Sequence record: NC_070882.1
Direction: 5' to 3' (one strand)
Length of the DNA stretch: 64,000 nt
Shown: positions 11,504-25,464 of the stretch, one piece after another
Layout: each line of letters begins with the position of its first letter
How positions within the stretch are numbered: position 1 is the stretch's first letter
Position numbers and translations under genes: made by a program
Notes under the pieces: generated by a model
The model's input: only the letters and a program-made list of their open reading frames with translations
The model's database searches: none
Told to the model about the DNA's origin: nothing

Positions 11504-12751
11504 ATGTATAACCGATACACTATCTCTCAAGAGATGTTAGCAGTTGGAGCTAAATCCAACATTGGACCGATCACTGAAAAATACGTTACTCTTATCAGAG
11601 AAGCGTATAAAAAGGACAAGATCATTCCCGTTAGTTTGTTTACTGATTTTGCAAAAGAATTAAAAGTTGAAACCGGTATTAATTACGAGTTTACTGTCAG
11701 TGGTGACTCCGGATTAGACGCCGGCGTTAGCCTAGAAATGATGGCGTTGGGTCATAGCGGTACTTGGTATAATGCACATAAGTGGCTTCGAGCAGAGAAC
11801 AGCTATAACGATCCGCGGAAACTTGAAACCATTATCGATGTTAAGAACGTTCGTGTTAAAGGTGGTCTCGCCGATGAACTGAAATTTAAGATGTATATCT
11901 CTCTTGGGTTCATTAGTGAGAAACTAGGTTTCACCATTCGTGAAGTAACTGCTGCTCTTGTTCACGAAATAGGACACACCTTTAACGTCTTTATGTACAT
12001 GGGCGACTACGTATGGCTTAACTATTATCTTACCGATGGAATTGAAATTCTACAAGGTAAGAAAAACAACGTATTCAAGCTTGAGGTTCTCACCGATAAA
12101 TGGTTGAAGGAAAACCTTAAAGAAGAAGAATACCAGGCCTACATTAATGACCGCTCTGATATCGGTAACGTTCGCCGTGCTATTCTATCTGCTTATAAAA
12201 AGGCACCACGACACCATTTGATGAATAACCCCGTTACAGCAATGCGACGTGAAGAGCAGATGGCAGATATGTTTGCCTCTCGTTTGGGTTATGGTCGTGA
12301 TCTAGCGACATGCCTCCATAAGTTCGATAAATACTACGGAATGGAGTACCAAGAGTCTGGGTACATCATGTTGATTATCCATGCCTTGGCCATGCTTTGG
12401 TTCTCACCATTAGTCATGTTGGTTATTCTTACAAATAGCGAAGTAGATGAATTCAATTTCTCTGCACGTTACGATGACCCACGTGAACGAATCATGAAAG
12501 TCCGTCGAGATCTTATTGCTCAACTACGTAGAACTGATACAGTTAAAGATAAAGCTTCGATGAGTGATGATGTTAAAGCTATCGATGACATTATTCGAGA
12601 CTTTTCTAATAACCGTAATTTGTTCGATACCGTCCTAGAATTCTTCCGTCCAGCTCGTCGTAAAGAAACTCAGTATAAACAAACTGAAGAGAATCTTGAG
12701 ACATTGCTGAACAATGATTTGTTCTTACAAGCTTTCCGCTTAACTCAATAA
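11504..12751 (+). CDS. Zincin-like metallopeptidase-domain protein (gp83-like, probably virion-associated)
   Basis: AALVHEIGH (HExxH) and downstream EEQMADMFA..GYG, gluzincin/M48-like. Confidence 0.7.
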   Translation: MYNRYTISQEMLAVGAKSNIGPITEKYVTLIREAYKKDKIIPVSLFTDFAKELKVETGINYEFTVSGDSGLDAGVSLEMMALGHSGTWYNAHKWLRAENSYNDPRKLETIIDVKNVRVKGGLADELKFKMYISLGFISEKLGFTIREVTAALVHEIGHTFNVFMYMGDYVWLNYYLTDGIEILQGKKNNVFKLEVLTDKWLKENLKEEEYQAYINDRSDIGNVRRAILSAYKKAPRHHLMNNPVTAMRREEQMADMFASRLGYGRDLATCLHKFDKYYGMEYQESGYIMLIIHALAMLWFSPLVMLVILTNSEVDEFNFSARYDDPRERIMKVRRDLIAQLRRTDTVKDKASMSDDVKAIDDIIRDFSNNRNLFDTVLEFFRPARRKETQYKQTEENLETLLNNDLFLQAFRLTQ

Positions 12752-12766
12752 ACAAGGTAGACCGAA

Positions 12767-13207
12767 ATGCGTACTGGTTTTGAAATTGCCCGTATCCTGA
12801 AAGAAATTAAATCCCCGACCAACAATGATCGTCAAGCTCGCGCCATGTTTGTAGCTAACGCTGTTGGTTTCTTTGTCCAGCTTGATCCATCTCTTTCTTG
12901 TGAAGAGTTGATTGATGCACACATGCCTATGTTGAAGAAGGTAGCTGGCCAGGTTAACGAGAATATTGCTCTCGACCTGAATCTGACTCGTGAACTCTTT
13001 AAACAAGTCATCCGTATCCGATTGGAACTGATTAACTGTGTTAGCGATCCTGCTATCATTGAAGCTGCAATGAAATCCGTTACAGCAGAAGATTATCAGA
13101 CAATCGATGAAACCGCTACCGCTAACATGCTTGCCAGTCGTTTTGATTTCGCTAAGAGTCAAAATGCTATAGCCAGTGTTCTGCGTCAGCTTGAAGTAGA
13201 AGGCTAA
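12767..13207 (+). CDS. Hypothetical protein
   Basis: 146 aa in + strand operon. Confidence 0.75.
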   Translation: MRTGFEIARILKEIKSPTNNDRQARAMFVANAVGFFVQLDPSLSCEELIDAHMPMLKKVAGQVNENIALDLNLTRELFKQVIRIRLELINCVSDPAIIEAAMKSVTAEDYQTIDETATANMLASRFDFAKSQNAIASVLRQLEVEG

Positions 13208-13224
13208 TTCAGGGAGGGGTCGTC

Positions 13225-13527
13225 ATGATCGACCATACCCATGATGACTTAGTTCACCCGCGTATTACAAAAGCATACGCAAAGTCATTAATCGTAAAAG
13301 AGAAGATCATCTCTGACCCTGAAATGTTGGTGACAGTCTGCATTACTAAATTACGTAATGGCCATCGGATTGTCACCGATGCAATTGTAGCGAATAAAGC
13401 AGCATTCGATTCTAAGCGTGGAGTTGTAGTAGCCAGGCGAAAAGCAATTGAAGAAATTATTCGTTTAGAATTGTACCTCTTACGTGACAAGCTTTACGAG
13501 CATTCTAAAGGTAATGAAAATGCATGA
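13225..13527 (+). CDS. Phage Gp49/66 family protein, Acb4-like nucleotide sponge candidate
   Basis: PRIT..TVC..LRNG..N..FD..G..AR..AI..I..LE.YLL matches the recalled PF13876 consensus; SD GGAGG. Confidence 0.7.
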   Translation: MIDHTHDDLVHPRITKAYAKSLIVKEKIISDPEMLVTVCITKLRNGHRIVTDAIVANKAAFDSKRGVVVARRKAIEEIIRLELYLLRDKLYEHSKGNENA

Positions 13528-14758
13528 ATACGATGACGTTCTTATTGAAGGACAACGACAGTTAGGTGAAGAGCTTGAAGCAGCTCCCGTCCGTGGAGTT
13601 CAGCTCGATCCAAATCTGCAAGAAAAGCTACATGCTGCATTGGAGCATATTAGCACGCTAGACGATCTACGTTCTACTATCCGTGCCGAAGGTGTTAGTT
13701 CGCATGATATCACAGCTCTTCGTGGTATCCATAGTTCCATGGAAGCTATTGGTTTGAATGTGCCAGTACTACCATCTCTGGAAAACTATAACGCTCTATT
13801 TACGCCCACACGTACTAGCTTGAATCTAAAGGTTTCTAATGAAGCTATTGGTTCGGCTATTATGGCTACCATTAAAGAATGGTTCCATGTACTGGTTGAC
13901 TTTATTGTAAAGACAATCCGTTGGGTTAAGTCAGTTGAGATGAATGACGAAGTGATCCAAGGTAGGATCGTTTCTATTAACGAAAAAATCGTTAAATTAG
14001 AATCCAACTGGAAAGAGATGCAAGCTTTGAACCGTTTGGGTAATCGTAATCTTGATCGTAAGTATTACGAAGCTGCCGAAGTGGTTCTACTTGATCCTAA
14101 GCTACCCCGCTCTGATATCGGCCTGTTGGCTTTTGGTGTAGATGATGATCTTCGTCGAATCCGAAATATCCAACAAGAAGCACAAAAATTTGGTGCACAA
14201 CTGCTGGAGCAAATTCGACAGCTTCGTCAAGTAATGGATCGCTCTCGTTTAGAACTTGGCTTTGAATCTCATATTGGACCACGACTACAGTCTCTGGCAG
14301 AAACGCTGAAGAACATGGATAGTCAGTCTGACGATCCTAACTTCTATATCAAACACAAACGAGTTGGTATTCGTTTCTTTGAAGATACTAAACGCATGTT
14401 AAAGCGTGAGCCAATTACATATAAGTTCATCTATGAGCTCTATGGTAAATGTGCAGACGAACTGCGTAAAGTGAATCGATTTGATCTAGAAGAATCTGTT
14501 GTACCACTTCCTAAACTTCAGGCTGTTATTGCCAACGTTAACGCTGGTATTGAAGCACTGAATGACATGGTTAAGGTATTCAGTCGTATTCCTCTTTATC
14601 AGTACAAAGCTGGTGCAACATATGCCAACTTCTTCATCAAGGCGCACGACATCGTTCGTGAAGATTTCTATGCTCATGTCGCAAGTGACGTAGCTAATGC
14701 CGCCTGGGATAAACTGATTAAGCGTTTTGAAGATATCAAACGTGAGCTTGGTATTTGA
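13520..14758 (+). CDS. Virion structural (head) protein (gp84-like)
   Basis: Helical protein with SLE/SNE protease-type sites; start 13514 or 13520. Confidence 0.65.
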   Translation: MHEYDDVLIEGQRQLGEELEAAPVRGVQLDPNLQEKLHAALEHISTLDDLRSTIRAEGVSSHDITALRGIHSSMEAIGLNVPVLPSLENYNALFTPTRTSLNLKVSNEAIGSAIMATIKEWFHVLVDFIVKTIRWVKSVEMNDEVIQGRIVSINEKIVKLESNWKEMQALNRLGNRNLDRKYYEAAEVVLLDPKLPRSDIGLLAFGVDDDLRRIRNIQQEAQKFGAQLLEQIRQLRQVMDRSRLELGFESHIGPRLQSLAETLKNMDSQSDDPNFYIKHKRVGIRFFEDTKRMLKREPITYKFIYELYGKCADELRKVNRFDLEESVVPLPKLQAVIANVNAGIEALNDMVKVFSRIPLYQYKAGATYANFFIKAHDIVREDFYAHVASDVANAAWDKLIKRFEDIKRELGI

Positions 14759-14767
14759 CAACATATT

Positions 14768-14786
14768 GCCCGGCATTGAGCCGGGC
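14768..14786. terminator. Bidirectional terminator
   Basis: GCCCGGC-ATTGA-GCCGGGC between convergent genes. Confidence 0.8.
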
Positions 14787-22753: not shown

Positions 22754-22785
22754 CATAAAGGGGAACCACACGGTTCCCCTTTATG
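22754..22785 (+). terminator. Terminator hairpin with CATAAA/TTTATG flanks
   Basis: AAGGGGAACC-ACAC-GGTTCCCCTT. Confidence 0.8.
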
Positions 22786-22818
22786 CTATGTTATCTATTC
22801 ACATGTCAGAGAATCGAA

Positions 22819-25464
22819 ATGACTATTCACAATCTGAACAAACATCTTGGTGGTGGTAAAGCCACCTCCTCAAACGAAGCTATTGCTGATGGCGTAGCTC
22901 GCGAAGTACCAGTTGATACTTCTGTAAAAGCCTTGACCACTACCAAAGATCTACCAGAAAATCCAGAAGAAGGTGCTGTTTATCACGTTAACGGTGTTGA
23001 CTGGGTATTCGTTAAAGGTGAATGGGTCACGCGTCAAGGTATTTATGGCCACGAAGATTTTGGCGATGCGCATGAACCTCTGTGGGATGGTACTGGTGAG
23101 AAACCTAATATCGAAACACAGAGAGCAGAATCTGAAGTTGTCCGAGAAAATAGTGATGAACCTGCAATCACTCCTGAGGGTACCAATGAGTCCACGGAAC
23201 AGGTTGTAAGTGAAACTGAACAAGTTGAAGAAGTAGTTGAAGAAAACGCTACTCCTGAACCTATCGTTAATCCAGCCTCTCCTAGTGAGACTATGGAAGA
23301 AGCTACTTCTGAAACGGAAGCCGAGAGTGAGTCAGTGGTTGAACCCACCGTACATGAACAGGTAGAAGCCCATGAAGCAGCAGCTAACCCCATCGAAGAG
23401 ATTGAGGAAAGCGAGACCCAGGAAGAAGAGAAACCCTCGACAGAAAACGTTGACGGGGAACCTCTAGCTCATCCCGTTGAAGAAGATAAGCCTGTTGAAG
23501 TAATGGAACCTTCTGATGTGGGTATGTGTGAAGAAACTATGTTGGCGCATGATCGCATCGGTCAAGTGGCGAATAGTATCGATCAGTTGCATACAGCACA
23601 GACTGCTCTAGAAGCTTATCACGATGTCGTTAAGACTGGTCGTGTGTCTAAGCAATCTGCCGCAGTACTTCATAAAGGTCTTGTTCATATTGATCGGACT
23701 TTTAATCTCAAGGTCAAAGCAACAGGACTTGAGGCATTCGATACTACTCCTCGTTCGGCAATGGAATCTGTCGATATTGATGATGAGACTATCACTGGAC
23801 GAATGAAGCAGATCGGTGGGGCAGTCTACAAAAAGATTCAAGAACTTCTCGCCAAGCTGATCGAATACATTAAGAACTTTGATCTAAAGCGTAAACAATC
23901 TGAAGCTAAAGTAGACAAGCTGCTTTCTCAGATCAGTGATGTACCGCGCAACGCGATTCCTGAAAACGAAAAGATTAAAGTATCGAAAGCTAAGTTCTTC
24001 TATGCTGGCGGTAAATTCGTTGGCACTGATACAAGTGCAGAAGTAGCTGTTATTGATCTAGCTGTATCTGCTGCCATGGCAATGCAGTCTAACGTTGTAT
24101 TCCTTGGTCAACAACTTGCTAAGATGGAAGCGACTAGTGATGGTGTGAACGAGTTCAGAAATGTTATTGAAACACGTCTGAGTCAGAACCGTGATCACGT
24201 TGAGAAAGATCTTCCAGGTGGTGGTAAAATCATCCGAGAAGGCCATGCCCTTATTCTTGAGCGTGGTGAAGATGAACATGCAGGTGAAGAACTAGATGCT
24301 CTTTCTCGTACTGATATCGAGAAAGCTTTGAAGTCACTTCAGAAGTTCTATCAGAATGCAGGTAAGTCTGACCGTATTTCTCGAATTGTAGATTCTGCTC
24401 GTACTAAGTCACAAGAAGCAATTAAAGCTGCACGTACTGGTGGTGATGAACGTTATGTTCAAGAGCTACAACAACTTTACGTTACAGCTGTAGCAGATAT
24501 GATCAAAGAGATGAATCTCCAGATGGTAACTGCTCTTGTTACTTATACGTCTTCTGGTAAAGCTATGTATCTTGAAGCATGCCTTGAGAACCTTAAAGTG
24601 CAAGGTGCTGGCATGGAGTCTCACGATCCGTTCGTATTCTCTAATGAAGGCCTCTTTACCGAAATCGGTCACTTCTTCAACGCTATGATTCATGGGCGTA
24701 AAGAAGATCTTAAGCCAGAGCAGTACAATGCGGTTAAGAGCAAGATCTCTAAAACGTTTGGTGATCCGAATTGGCTGAAGAATCGTCGTTTCATTGAAGG
24801 CGATATTAAGTTCAAAGGAGATCCTTCTCTTGGGGATAACTTCAAACAAGTAATCGCTAAGGCAGTTGGTCAACTTAACCAGGCGGCCCGTGGTAACGCA
24901 GCTGTGTTTACCCGAGCTGCTAACTCCGTTAAGCCATATACTGACTTCCTGATCAAGATGGAATATCGTAACCATCCTGAGAAGACTCAGAAAATGTACG
25001 ACGGCATGCCAAGCTTTGATAAGAATAAGTTCAAACCCGTTAAATATAACAGTGGTATGGCACATTCTTACGTAGACGTTACTCTTCCTGCAATGACTCC
25101 AGAACAGGTAGCCTCAGCCGCAGATGAGATCATTAAAGCTATTGATTATATCACTGGCTATTGGAAAACATCTATGGGCAAAGAGTGGTGGGATACTTTC
25201 AACGTTGAGAATGAGTACGGTCTATTTGGTCGATTTATTCCAGCGCACATGGAAGGTTCCGGTAAGTACACGGATGTTATCCGTAACATTGCTACGTACA
25301 CTAAAGGTGAAGACCAGAAATGGTGTGTTAAGCTTGCCAGTAAGATTGCTGAATTCGCTGATGATGGCGAAGCCACATTCTTCAAAGAAGGCGGTGGTCA
25401 GTGGGAATTCTATTTCACTTACATCCGCGGTCTAATCAACTGGATGGATGCTTCCACCCGTTAA
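22819..25464 (+). CDS. Large internal head (ejection) protein, gp93-family, apparent two-module fusion
   Basis: Acidic linker, ALEAY..GLEAF..AMES module, second GMES..SNEGLF module. Confidence 0.7.
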   Translation: MTIHNLNKHLGGGKATSSNEAIADGVAREVPVDTSVKALTTTKDLPENPEEGAVYHVNGVDWVFVKGEWVTRQGIYGHEDFGDAHEPLWDGTGEKPNIETQRAESEVVRENSDEPAITPEGTNESTEQVVSETEQVEEVVEENATPEPIVNPASPSETMEEATSETEAESESVVEPTVHEQVEAHEAAANPIEEIEESETQEEEKPSTENVDGEPLAHPVEEDKPVEVMEPSDVGMCEETMLAHDRIGQVANSIDQLHTAQTALEAYHDVVKTGRVSKQSAAVLHKGLVHIDRTFNLKVKATGLEAFDTTPRSAMESVDIDDETITGRMKQIGGAVYKKIQELLAKLIEYIKNFDLKRKQSEAKVDKLLSQISDVPRNAIPENEKIKVSKAKFFYAGGKFVGTDTSAEVAVIDLAVSAAMAMQSNVVFLGQQLAKMEATSDGVNEFRNVIETRLSQNRDHVEKDLPGGGKIIREGHALILERGEDEHAGEELDALSRTDIEKALKSLQKFYQNAGKSDRISRIVDSARTKSQEAIKAARTGGDERYVQELQQLYVTAVADMIKEMNLQMVTALVTYTSSGKAMYLEACLENLKVQGAGMESHDPFVFSNEGLFTEIGHFFNAMIHGRKEDLKPEQYNAVKSKISKTFGDPNWLKNRRFIEGDIKFKGDPSLGDNFKQVIAKAVGQLNQAARGNAAVFTRAANSVKPYTDFLIKMEYRNHPEKTQKMYDGMPSFDKNKFKPVKYNSGMAHSYVDVTLPAMTPEQVASAADEIIKAIDYITGYWKTSMGKEWWDTFNVENEYGLFGRFIPAHMEGSGKYTDVIRNIATYTKGEDQKWCVKLASKIAEFADDGEATFFKEGGGQWEFYFTYIRGLINWMDASTR

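Follow-up and report, generated by a model that had tools for sequence, protein, structure and literature searches.

Organisation of the locus

The 64,000-nt stretch of NC_070882.1 analysed here (the window) belongs to a PS119XW/PA1C-type Pseudomonas chimallivirus, a nucleus-forming jumbo phage. It is identical (100% over the 2.1 kb compared) to Pseudomonas phage vB_PaeM_PS119XW and 99.3–99.7% identical to PA1C, phiHQ, phiLBG22, BRkr and HHBS36_1. These relatives are phiKZ-like jumbo phages of 300 kb; the relative HPP-Temi is placed in the genus Pawinskivirus.

A small gene of the PF13876 family lies within a unit of head genes (Table 1). The unit opens with the counterpart of phiKZ gp84, whose counterparts in PhiPA3 and 201phi2-1 are annotated virion proteins, and the sponge-family gene is flanked by the genes for two head vertex-binding proteins. 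Its stop codon (13525–13527) overlaps the gp86-like start at the ATG at 13520 by 8 nt; were translation to begin at 13514 or 13484 instead, the two genes would share 14 or 44 nt. The preliminary description had placed the gene inside a structural operon and across the start of a head protein gene, and both points hold. The gp86-like gene converges on a gp87-like gene, and the hairpin between the two has T-rich tails on both strands. This hairpin is likely a bidirectional terminator that closes the four-gene unit 11504–14758. A scan for sigma-70 promoters returned fewer matches than shuffled sequence did, which is uninformative because phages of this kind use their own RNA polymerases. None of three RNA runs screened was useful, as each contained less than 10% of the sampled words. 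Judging from the neighbouring genes alone, the sponge-family gene would be expressed late.

Table 1. Features of the head-gene unit that contains the sponge-family gene (window coordinates).
Feature	Position	Strand	Basis or remark
phiKZ gp84 counterpart, first gene of the unit	11504..12751	+	phrog_2767, 1.4e-92
gp85-like head vertex-binding protein gene	12767..13207	+	PF25615, 4.5e-70; 17 nt 5' of the sponge-family gene
Shine-Dalgarno GGGAGGGG	13212-13219	+	5 nt 5' of the sponge-family ATG; read directly from the sequence
Sponge-family gene, PF13876 (Phage_gp49_66 / Acb4 family), 100 aa	13225..13527	+	ORF, ATG..TGA
Codons 45-57 (N-G-H-R ... T-D-A-I-V-A-N), strand beta3 and the loop after it	13357..13395	+	alignments
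gp86-like head vertex-binding protein gene	13520..14758	+	PF25617, 5.2e-165; start as annotated in PA1C
GC-rich bidirectional hairpin, perfect 7-bp (7 G-C pairs)	14768..14786	.	terminator scan

Membership of the Acb4 family

The sponge-family protein is a real member of the Acb4 family PF13876. The resemblance to the Gp49/66 consensus is borne out by a profile run, in which the protein scores 42.5 bits (curated cut-off 27; E 9.7e-11) and aligns with the whole profile (1–82 of 82). It also matches phrog_322 at 8e-25. On PF13876 the orthologues in eight other jumbo phages score 29–44 bits, SPO1 Acb4 scores 35.5 bits and the canonical N4-like protein, Erwinia S6 gp048, scores 90.9 bits. A family profile was needed for the link to a solved structure because a single-sequence search of the PDB with the protein gave chance matches only (E at least 0.13). 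The profile, built from 108 homologues, retrieved Acb4 (9E4W) as the sole significant solved structure (E 7.3e-9). A BLASTP alignment with SPO1 Acb4 (23% identity, 48 residues, E 0.001) served as a register check only, and the SPO1 gp1.3 sequence was confirmed by comparison to be the chain of 9E4W.

According to the Acb4 paper (bioRxiv 10.1101/2024.12.30.630793), SPO1 gp1.3 is Acb4, a tetrameric 3'3'-cGAMP sponge of PF13876 (PDB 9E4W) and the founding characterised member of the family; the preliminary description had already placed Acb4 in this family and named 3'3'-cGAMP as its ligand. Eight PF13876 members of differing sequence were assayed there, and all eight bound 3'3'-cGAMP. Table S3 of that paper lists the exact window protein as A0A4D6BJL4 of phage PA1C, along with the proteins of PhiPA3, 201phi2-1, Phabio and Noxifer, so that its place in the family was already on record. 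None of the proteins named as assayed in the available text is from a Pseudomonas jumbo phage, and no paper ranked in a literature search joined Acb4 with jumbo-phage terms.

Predicted fold and tetramer

The AlphaFold2 model has a mean pLDDT of 88.6 and comprises H16–22, E23–31, E36–43, E48–54 and H63–99, the last helix being long. The model thus contains a three-stranded antiparallel sheet with flanking helices that can be superposed on 9E4W. This solved structure is the top Foldseek match of the predicted model (probability 1.0, TM 0.59–0.73) and its best match by VIA-align (Z 9.1, rmsd 2.6 A, 74 residues), so that the overlay on Acb4 proposed in the preliminary description came out in favour of the family assignment.

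Modelling of four copies predicts a homotetramer, with an ipSAE of 0.87 versus 0.10 for the best control. Among solved structures, 21 of 30 homodimers and none of 23 monomers attained the score mark used; the tetramer score may in part reflect the model's memory of 9E4W. The runs agreed in at least 80% of contacts, with a partner pLDDT of at least 82. The subunits meet through the beta-sheet face (residues 25–54) and through a helix joint (44–47 with 81–92), and both modelled interfaces match the beta-sandwich dimer and helix 'joint' interfaces described for Acb4.

The next fold matches were RF2 domain 3, Rv2632c, the hibernation factors RaiA/HPF/YfiA and dsRBDs, at Z 5–7.7. The matches to RF2 domain 3, the hibernation factors and dsRBDs, taken with the basic charge of the window protein (pI 9.3, against 4.5–5.0 for the acidic S6 gp048 and SPO1 Acb4), could be read as signs of an RNA- or ribosome-binding protein that might tune translation late in infection. 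Such a role seems very unlikely. SPO1 Acb4, a genuine sponge, is itself given the same secondary fold matches in the Acb4 paper (bioRxiv 10.1101/2024.12.30.630793), and the matches therefore reflect a shared ancient fold. The charge is not kept within the clade (-0.3 in 201phi2-1 and -2.1 in Noxifer), and a scan of family models found no sequence match to any RNA-binding family, the likeness to dsRBD and hibernation-factor folds being one of topology without a sequence relationship. In the model, moreover, the tetramer buries the beta-sheet face.

Synteny, conservation and selection

The order gp85–PF13876–gp86 is found in three metagenomic contigs and nine sequenced phages, among them PhiPA3 (gp088), 201phi2-1 (gp147), Psa21, Phabio, Noxifer, Viktualia, RVTF4 and HPP-Temi. 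Metagenomic contigs from all three subclades described below share this order. The stop codon overlaps the gp86 start by 4–32 nt in 10 of 12 related loci. A genome-wide search found a single copy of the gene in each of PA1C, PhiPA3, 201phi2-1 and Noxifer, and found no PF13876 match anywhere in phiKZ. About 48 Phikzvirus records resemble phiKZ in that gp85 directly adjoins gp86 at a distance of 10 nt, with no PF13876 gene anywhere. In phiKZ itself (NC_004629, 83665–83676) the two genes are 10 nt apart, with no trace of a PF13876 gene between them. The pattern suggests that the Phikzvirus line has lost the gene cleanly, which is the simpler history because the more distant Noxifer keeps the gene.

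The gene is functional, under purifying selection and selectively maintained. Over the whole 100 codons, dN/dS is 0.033 between PS119XW and HPP-Temi (dS 0.80); it is 0.128 between 201phi2-1 and Viktualia and 0.085 between RVTF4 and Psa21. These are the three informative pairs, with dS reaching 0.8–1.2. The protein is 95% identical to its HPP-Temi orthologue, versus 87% for gp85 and 78% for gp86, and 74% identical to that of PhiPA3, versus 59% and 36%. No reading frame is interrupted in any of the nine sequenced phages or in some two dozen additional metagenomic members of the clade. The preliminary description had allowed that the variant may be inactive; the low dN/dS and a conservation above that of the neighbouring head proteins exclude this option.

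The same data bear on a specific form of that idea, in which the gene is an inactive sponge relic retained solely because translation of gp86 begins within its 3' end. The overlap with the gp86 start and the substitutions at family-conserved positions would fit a relic, but constraint extends across all 100 codons (dN/dS 0.03–0.13), the frames are intact throughout, 28 positions are invariant in the subclade of the window protein and the model is a confident one. A relic is scarcely credible on this evidence.

Tad1 and the virion

In phiKZ, Tad1 (gp184) is a sponge and a minor capsid protein that is delivered by injection. A homologue of the Tad1 sponge domain is encoded in PA1C outside the window (MK599315.1, 198584–198940; 54% identity over phiKZ gp184 residues 112–230). 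Homologues are present in PhiPA3, 201phi2-1 and Noxifer as well, so that each of these phages carries two sponge families. A complementary distribution of the two genes was considered and rejected, as PA1C, PhiPA3, 201phi2-1 and Noxifer have both. The PF13876 protein would thus be a second sponge and not a replacement for Tad1.

Like the role proposed for the sponge-family protein, Tad1 is a head-linked nucleotide-signal sponge of a nucleus-forming Pseudomonas jumbo phage. Tad1, however, is of an unrelated fold and family; sponges of its type have an N-terminal capsid-wedging module with a head-protease site after it, and Tad1 is packaged and injected. Elsewhere in the window, the ORF at 22783–25464 (+ strand) encodes an 893-aa protein that falls in PF12699, the family of phiKZ internal head proteins (1.9e-29). 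Near its N-terminus it has a motif of 47 residues in common with phiKZ gp184/Tad1 (68% identity, residues 48–93 vs 64–110). The shared motif probably corresponds to the module that reportedly wedges into the capsid until a protease releases the sponge for injection. This 47-residue module is absent from the 100-aa sponge-family protein, and delivery by the capsid in the manner of phiKZ Tad1 was rejected on this ground. Mass spectrometry of 201phi2-1 virions identified the neighbours gp146 and gp148 but not the orthologue gp147. The label 'virion structural protein' is likewise given only to the neighbours, and not to the PF13876 orthologue, in PhiPA3, Psa21, Phabio and Noxifer. Lacking the wedge module, and with its 201phi2-1 orthologue not reported in virions, the sponge-family protein is therefore probably cytoplasmic and not packaged.

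As an alternative to a sponge, the Acb4 fold may have been co-opted as a non-packaged assembly factor or chaperone for gp85 and gp86, with no binding of immune signals left. The slot between these two genes is fixed in every locus examined, the overlap with gp86 is widespread (10/12), the protein is as conserved as the two head proteins or more, residues invariant in the family are missing, and anti-defence genes, unlike this one, usually turn over fast. Co-option is nonetheless unlikely. Phikzvirus, including phiKZ and the roughly 48 records noted above, keeps gp85 and gp86 without a PF13876 gene, and these head proteins therefore do not need the PF13876 protein. The absence of the orthologue from the reported virion proteins, where its neighbours were found, and the tetramer interfaces kept in the model also speak against it.

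Proposed role

It seems on balance probable that the gene product is a working tetrameric sponge for a cyclic nucleotide, synthesised along with the head proteins. Family, predicted fold and tetramer, selection and synteny carry this reading, to which ligand binding, an anti-defence effect and the timing of expression are added by inference. Pockets between the subunits of the homotetramer would trap one of the cyclic nucleotides that the Pseudomonas host uses as immune signals and so keep abortive-infection effectors off. CBASS-type signals would be the default class of ligand expected. Translational coupling to gp86 is proposed, and so the protein would probably be made together with the head proteins. 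The PF13876 protein would act beside the separate Tad1-type sponge encoded elsewhere in the genome. The gene is not a recently acquired accessory gene, but one inherited vertically at a single fixed slot between gp85-like and gp86-like genes.

The sponge reading fits what is known of phiKZ, whose infection triggers CBASS signalling and which uses the sponge Tad1. An nlp1 mutant of phiKZ is killed by type III-C CBASS and is rescued by the sponge Acb2 (PMC12676376), and the earlier suggestion that the phage nucleus does not block CBASS, making such a gene useful, agrees with this observation. In a 2026 review, Tad1 is named as the one anti-defence protein described to date from jumbo phages.

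Comparison with characterised relatives supports a shared architecture in a different genomic setting. SPO1 Acb4 and the window protein belong to the same Pfam family, share the alpha-beta-beta-beta-alpha core and, in the predicted homotetramer, both kinds of interface, and have in common V at V56, F at F62 and the invariant G67 and Y85, yet they are only about 20% identical. The genes clustered with SPO1 acb4 are small and uncharacterised, whereas the window gene lies inside a head-gene unit, and 3'3'-cGAMP-binding activity of SPO1 Acb4 is present by about 15 min after infection. The N4-like gp49-type proteins (N4 gp49; Erwinia S6 gp048; Ab09 gp59, an Acb4-Sequestin fusion of a Pseudomonas phage) are of the same family and come from phages of Gram-negative hosts, including P. 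aeruginosa. The family that includes them is reported to bind 3'3'-cGAMP and c-di-AMP and to be tetrameric. They score about 90 bits on PF13876, in contrast to 42.5 for the window protein, and keep the motifs G-E-S-A-C and W-x-L-E-G-Y, which the jumbo-phage clade lacks. They also occupy a variable anti-signalling hot spot, often as fusions with Sequestin or Tad2, whereas the jumbo-phage genes stand alone in one fixed slot. The usual setting of acb4 is an accessory-gene island, as in SPO1 and N4-like phages, and the position of the window gene is unlike these.

If this role is correct, PhiPA3, 201phi2-1 and the therapy-relevant PA1C/PS119XW-type phages would gain a second sponge from another family. 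Vertical inheritance, conservation above the surrounding capsid genes and a clean loss in Phikzvirus only would be atypical of anti-defence genes. The finding carries limited weight, as family membership is already in public tables and sponge function here is a prediction. The proposal can be tested directly, since genetic tools and P. aeruginosa strains with CBASS, Thoeris and Panoptes exist.

Substitutions in the predicted pocket

The two substitutions named in the preliminary description, SAC to AIV and W.LEGY to I.RLELY, are present relative to the family consensus: the canonical S/A-A/S-C reads A53-I54-V55 and the canonical W-x-L-E-G-Y reads I79-R-L-E-L83-Y84. At the 'C', 'W' and 'G' positions the validated SPO1 Acb4 itself carries V, I and A, respectively, and these changes are therefore no argument for a lost or altered function. 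More unusual positions in the window protein are L35, H47, R48, T51, D52, I54 and R65. The protein keeps G67 and Y85 (SPO1 numbering), and G52 is replaced by T. G52, W80 and G84 are replaced in all 33 jumbo-phage members and are present in 93/93, 93/93 and 92/93 other PF13876 proteins, respectively; SPO1 Acb4 is also without W80 and G84.

Ten ligand-contact positions of SPO1 Acb4, taken from the Acb4 paper (bioRxiv 10.1101/2024.12.30.630793), can be mapped onto the window protein (Table 2). Two are identical, two are conservative and six show a non-conservative change. Codons 45–57 hold the counterparts of the contacts F48, E49, V56 and Y57; within clade A, nine of these 13 residues do not vary and H47 hardly does. 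Contact positions vary too among family members reported in that paper to bind cGAMP, so contact residues do not define membership. The pocket appears rebuilt relative to that of SPO1 Acb4, and given the replacements K36 to L, F48 to H, E49 to R, Y57 to A, I66 to R and T70 to V, the ligand preference may differ. Binding of a signal other than 3'3'-cGAMP by the window protein is conceivable from these residues, though the balance leans against it.

Table 2. SPO1 Acb4 ligand-contact positions, their counterparts in the window protein, and residues in the three jumbo-phage subclades.
SPO1 residue	Window residue	Remark	Clade A	Psa21-like	Noxifer-like
K36	L35	guanine-reading in SPO1	L/C	R	R
F48	H47	stacking in SPO1	H	Q	Y/F
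E49	R48	guanine-reading in SPO1	R	T/S	A
V56	V55	identical			
Y57	A56	changed	A	G	P
F62	F61	identical			
N63	D62	conservative			
I66	R65	changed	R/K	K/R	small residue
T70	V69	changed	V/I	V/I	H
K81	R80	conservative			

The jumbo-phage clade and its subclades

A word-seeded profile search yielded 957 PF13876 proteins, 114 of which are covered by a quick maximum-likelihood tree (IQ-TREE). Thirty-three tree rows form one clade (SH-aLRT 99) on a stem of 1.73 substitutions per site; long-branch warnings touch the placement of this clade in the family and not its unity. Thirteen of the 33 rows were traced to sequenced jumbo phages or to contigs of 170–316 kb, and three more on shorter contigs (P0004, P0005 and P0006) were traced by a gp85/gp86 flank or by phage name. 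The tree and the traced loci indicate that the jumbo-phage branch is a distinct, old clade confined to jumbo-phage-type loci.

Three supported subclades were resolved within it, with the caveats of a quick tree and long branches: clade A (PA1C type, PhiPA3, 201phi2-1, Viktualia and Phabio), a Psa21-like subclade (the Psa21/RVTF4-like group) and a Noxifer-like subclade (the Noxifer-like group). Each has its own fixed set of pocket residues (Table 2). In clade A, R48 and the run D-A-I-V-A-N are among the 28 invariant positions. Three subclades with different fixed pockets offer a natural series for the evolution of sponge specificity. It may tentatively be proposed, from a comparison of these residues, that the jumbo-phage Acb4 branch switched ligand more than once, a history that is possible but not the expected one. 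The subclade pockets may be read in two ways. The phages may track Pseudomonas signals other than 3'3'-cGAMP. Alternatively, the pockets may serve to dodge the c-di-AMP decoys of guard systems like Panoptes, which punish ordinary Acb4. In this tentative picture, the fixed place in the head operon would bring the sponge into play just when capsid proteins set off signalling.

A search for related loci with the single protein and with the clade-A alignment found only the copies of PhiPA3, 201phi2-1 and Phabio and one partial metagenomic contig. The partial clade-A copy lies at bases 1–171 of the 31-kb IMG/VR contig 3300007103_000016 and covers residues 36–92 at 51% identity, which suggests that more uncultured relatives exist. 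Elsewhere in PF13876, longer or fused metagenomic relatives occur, among them P0062 (147 aa, which also matches PF08681) and P0017 and P0107, each of about 200 aa.
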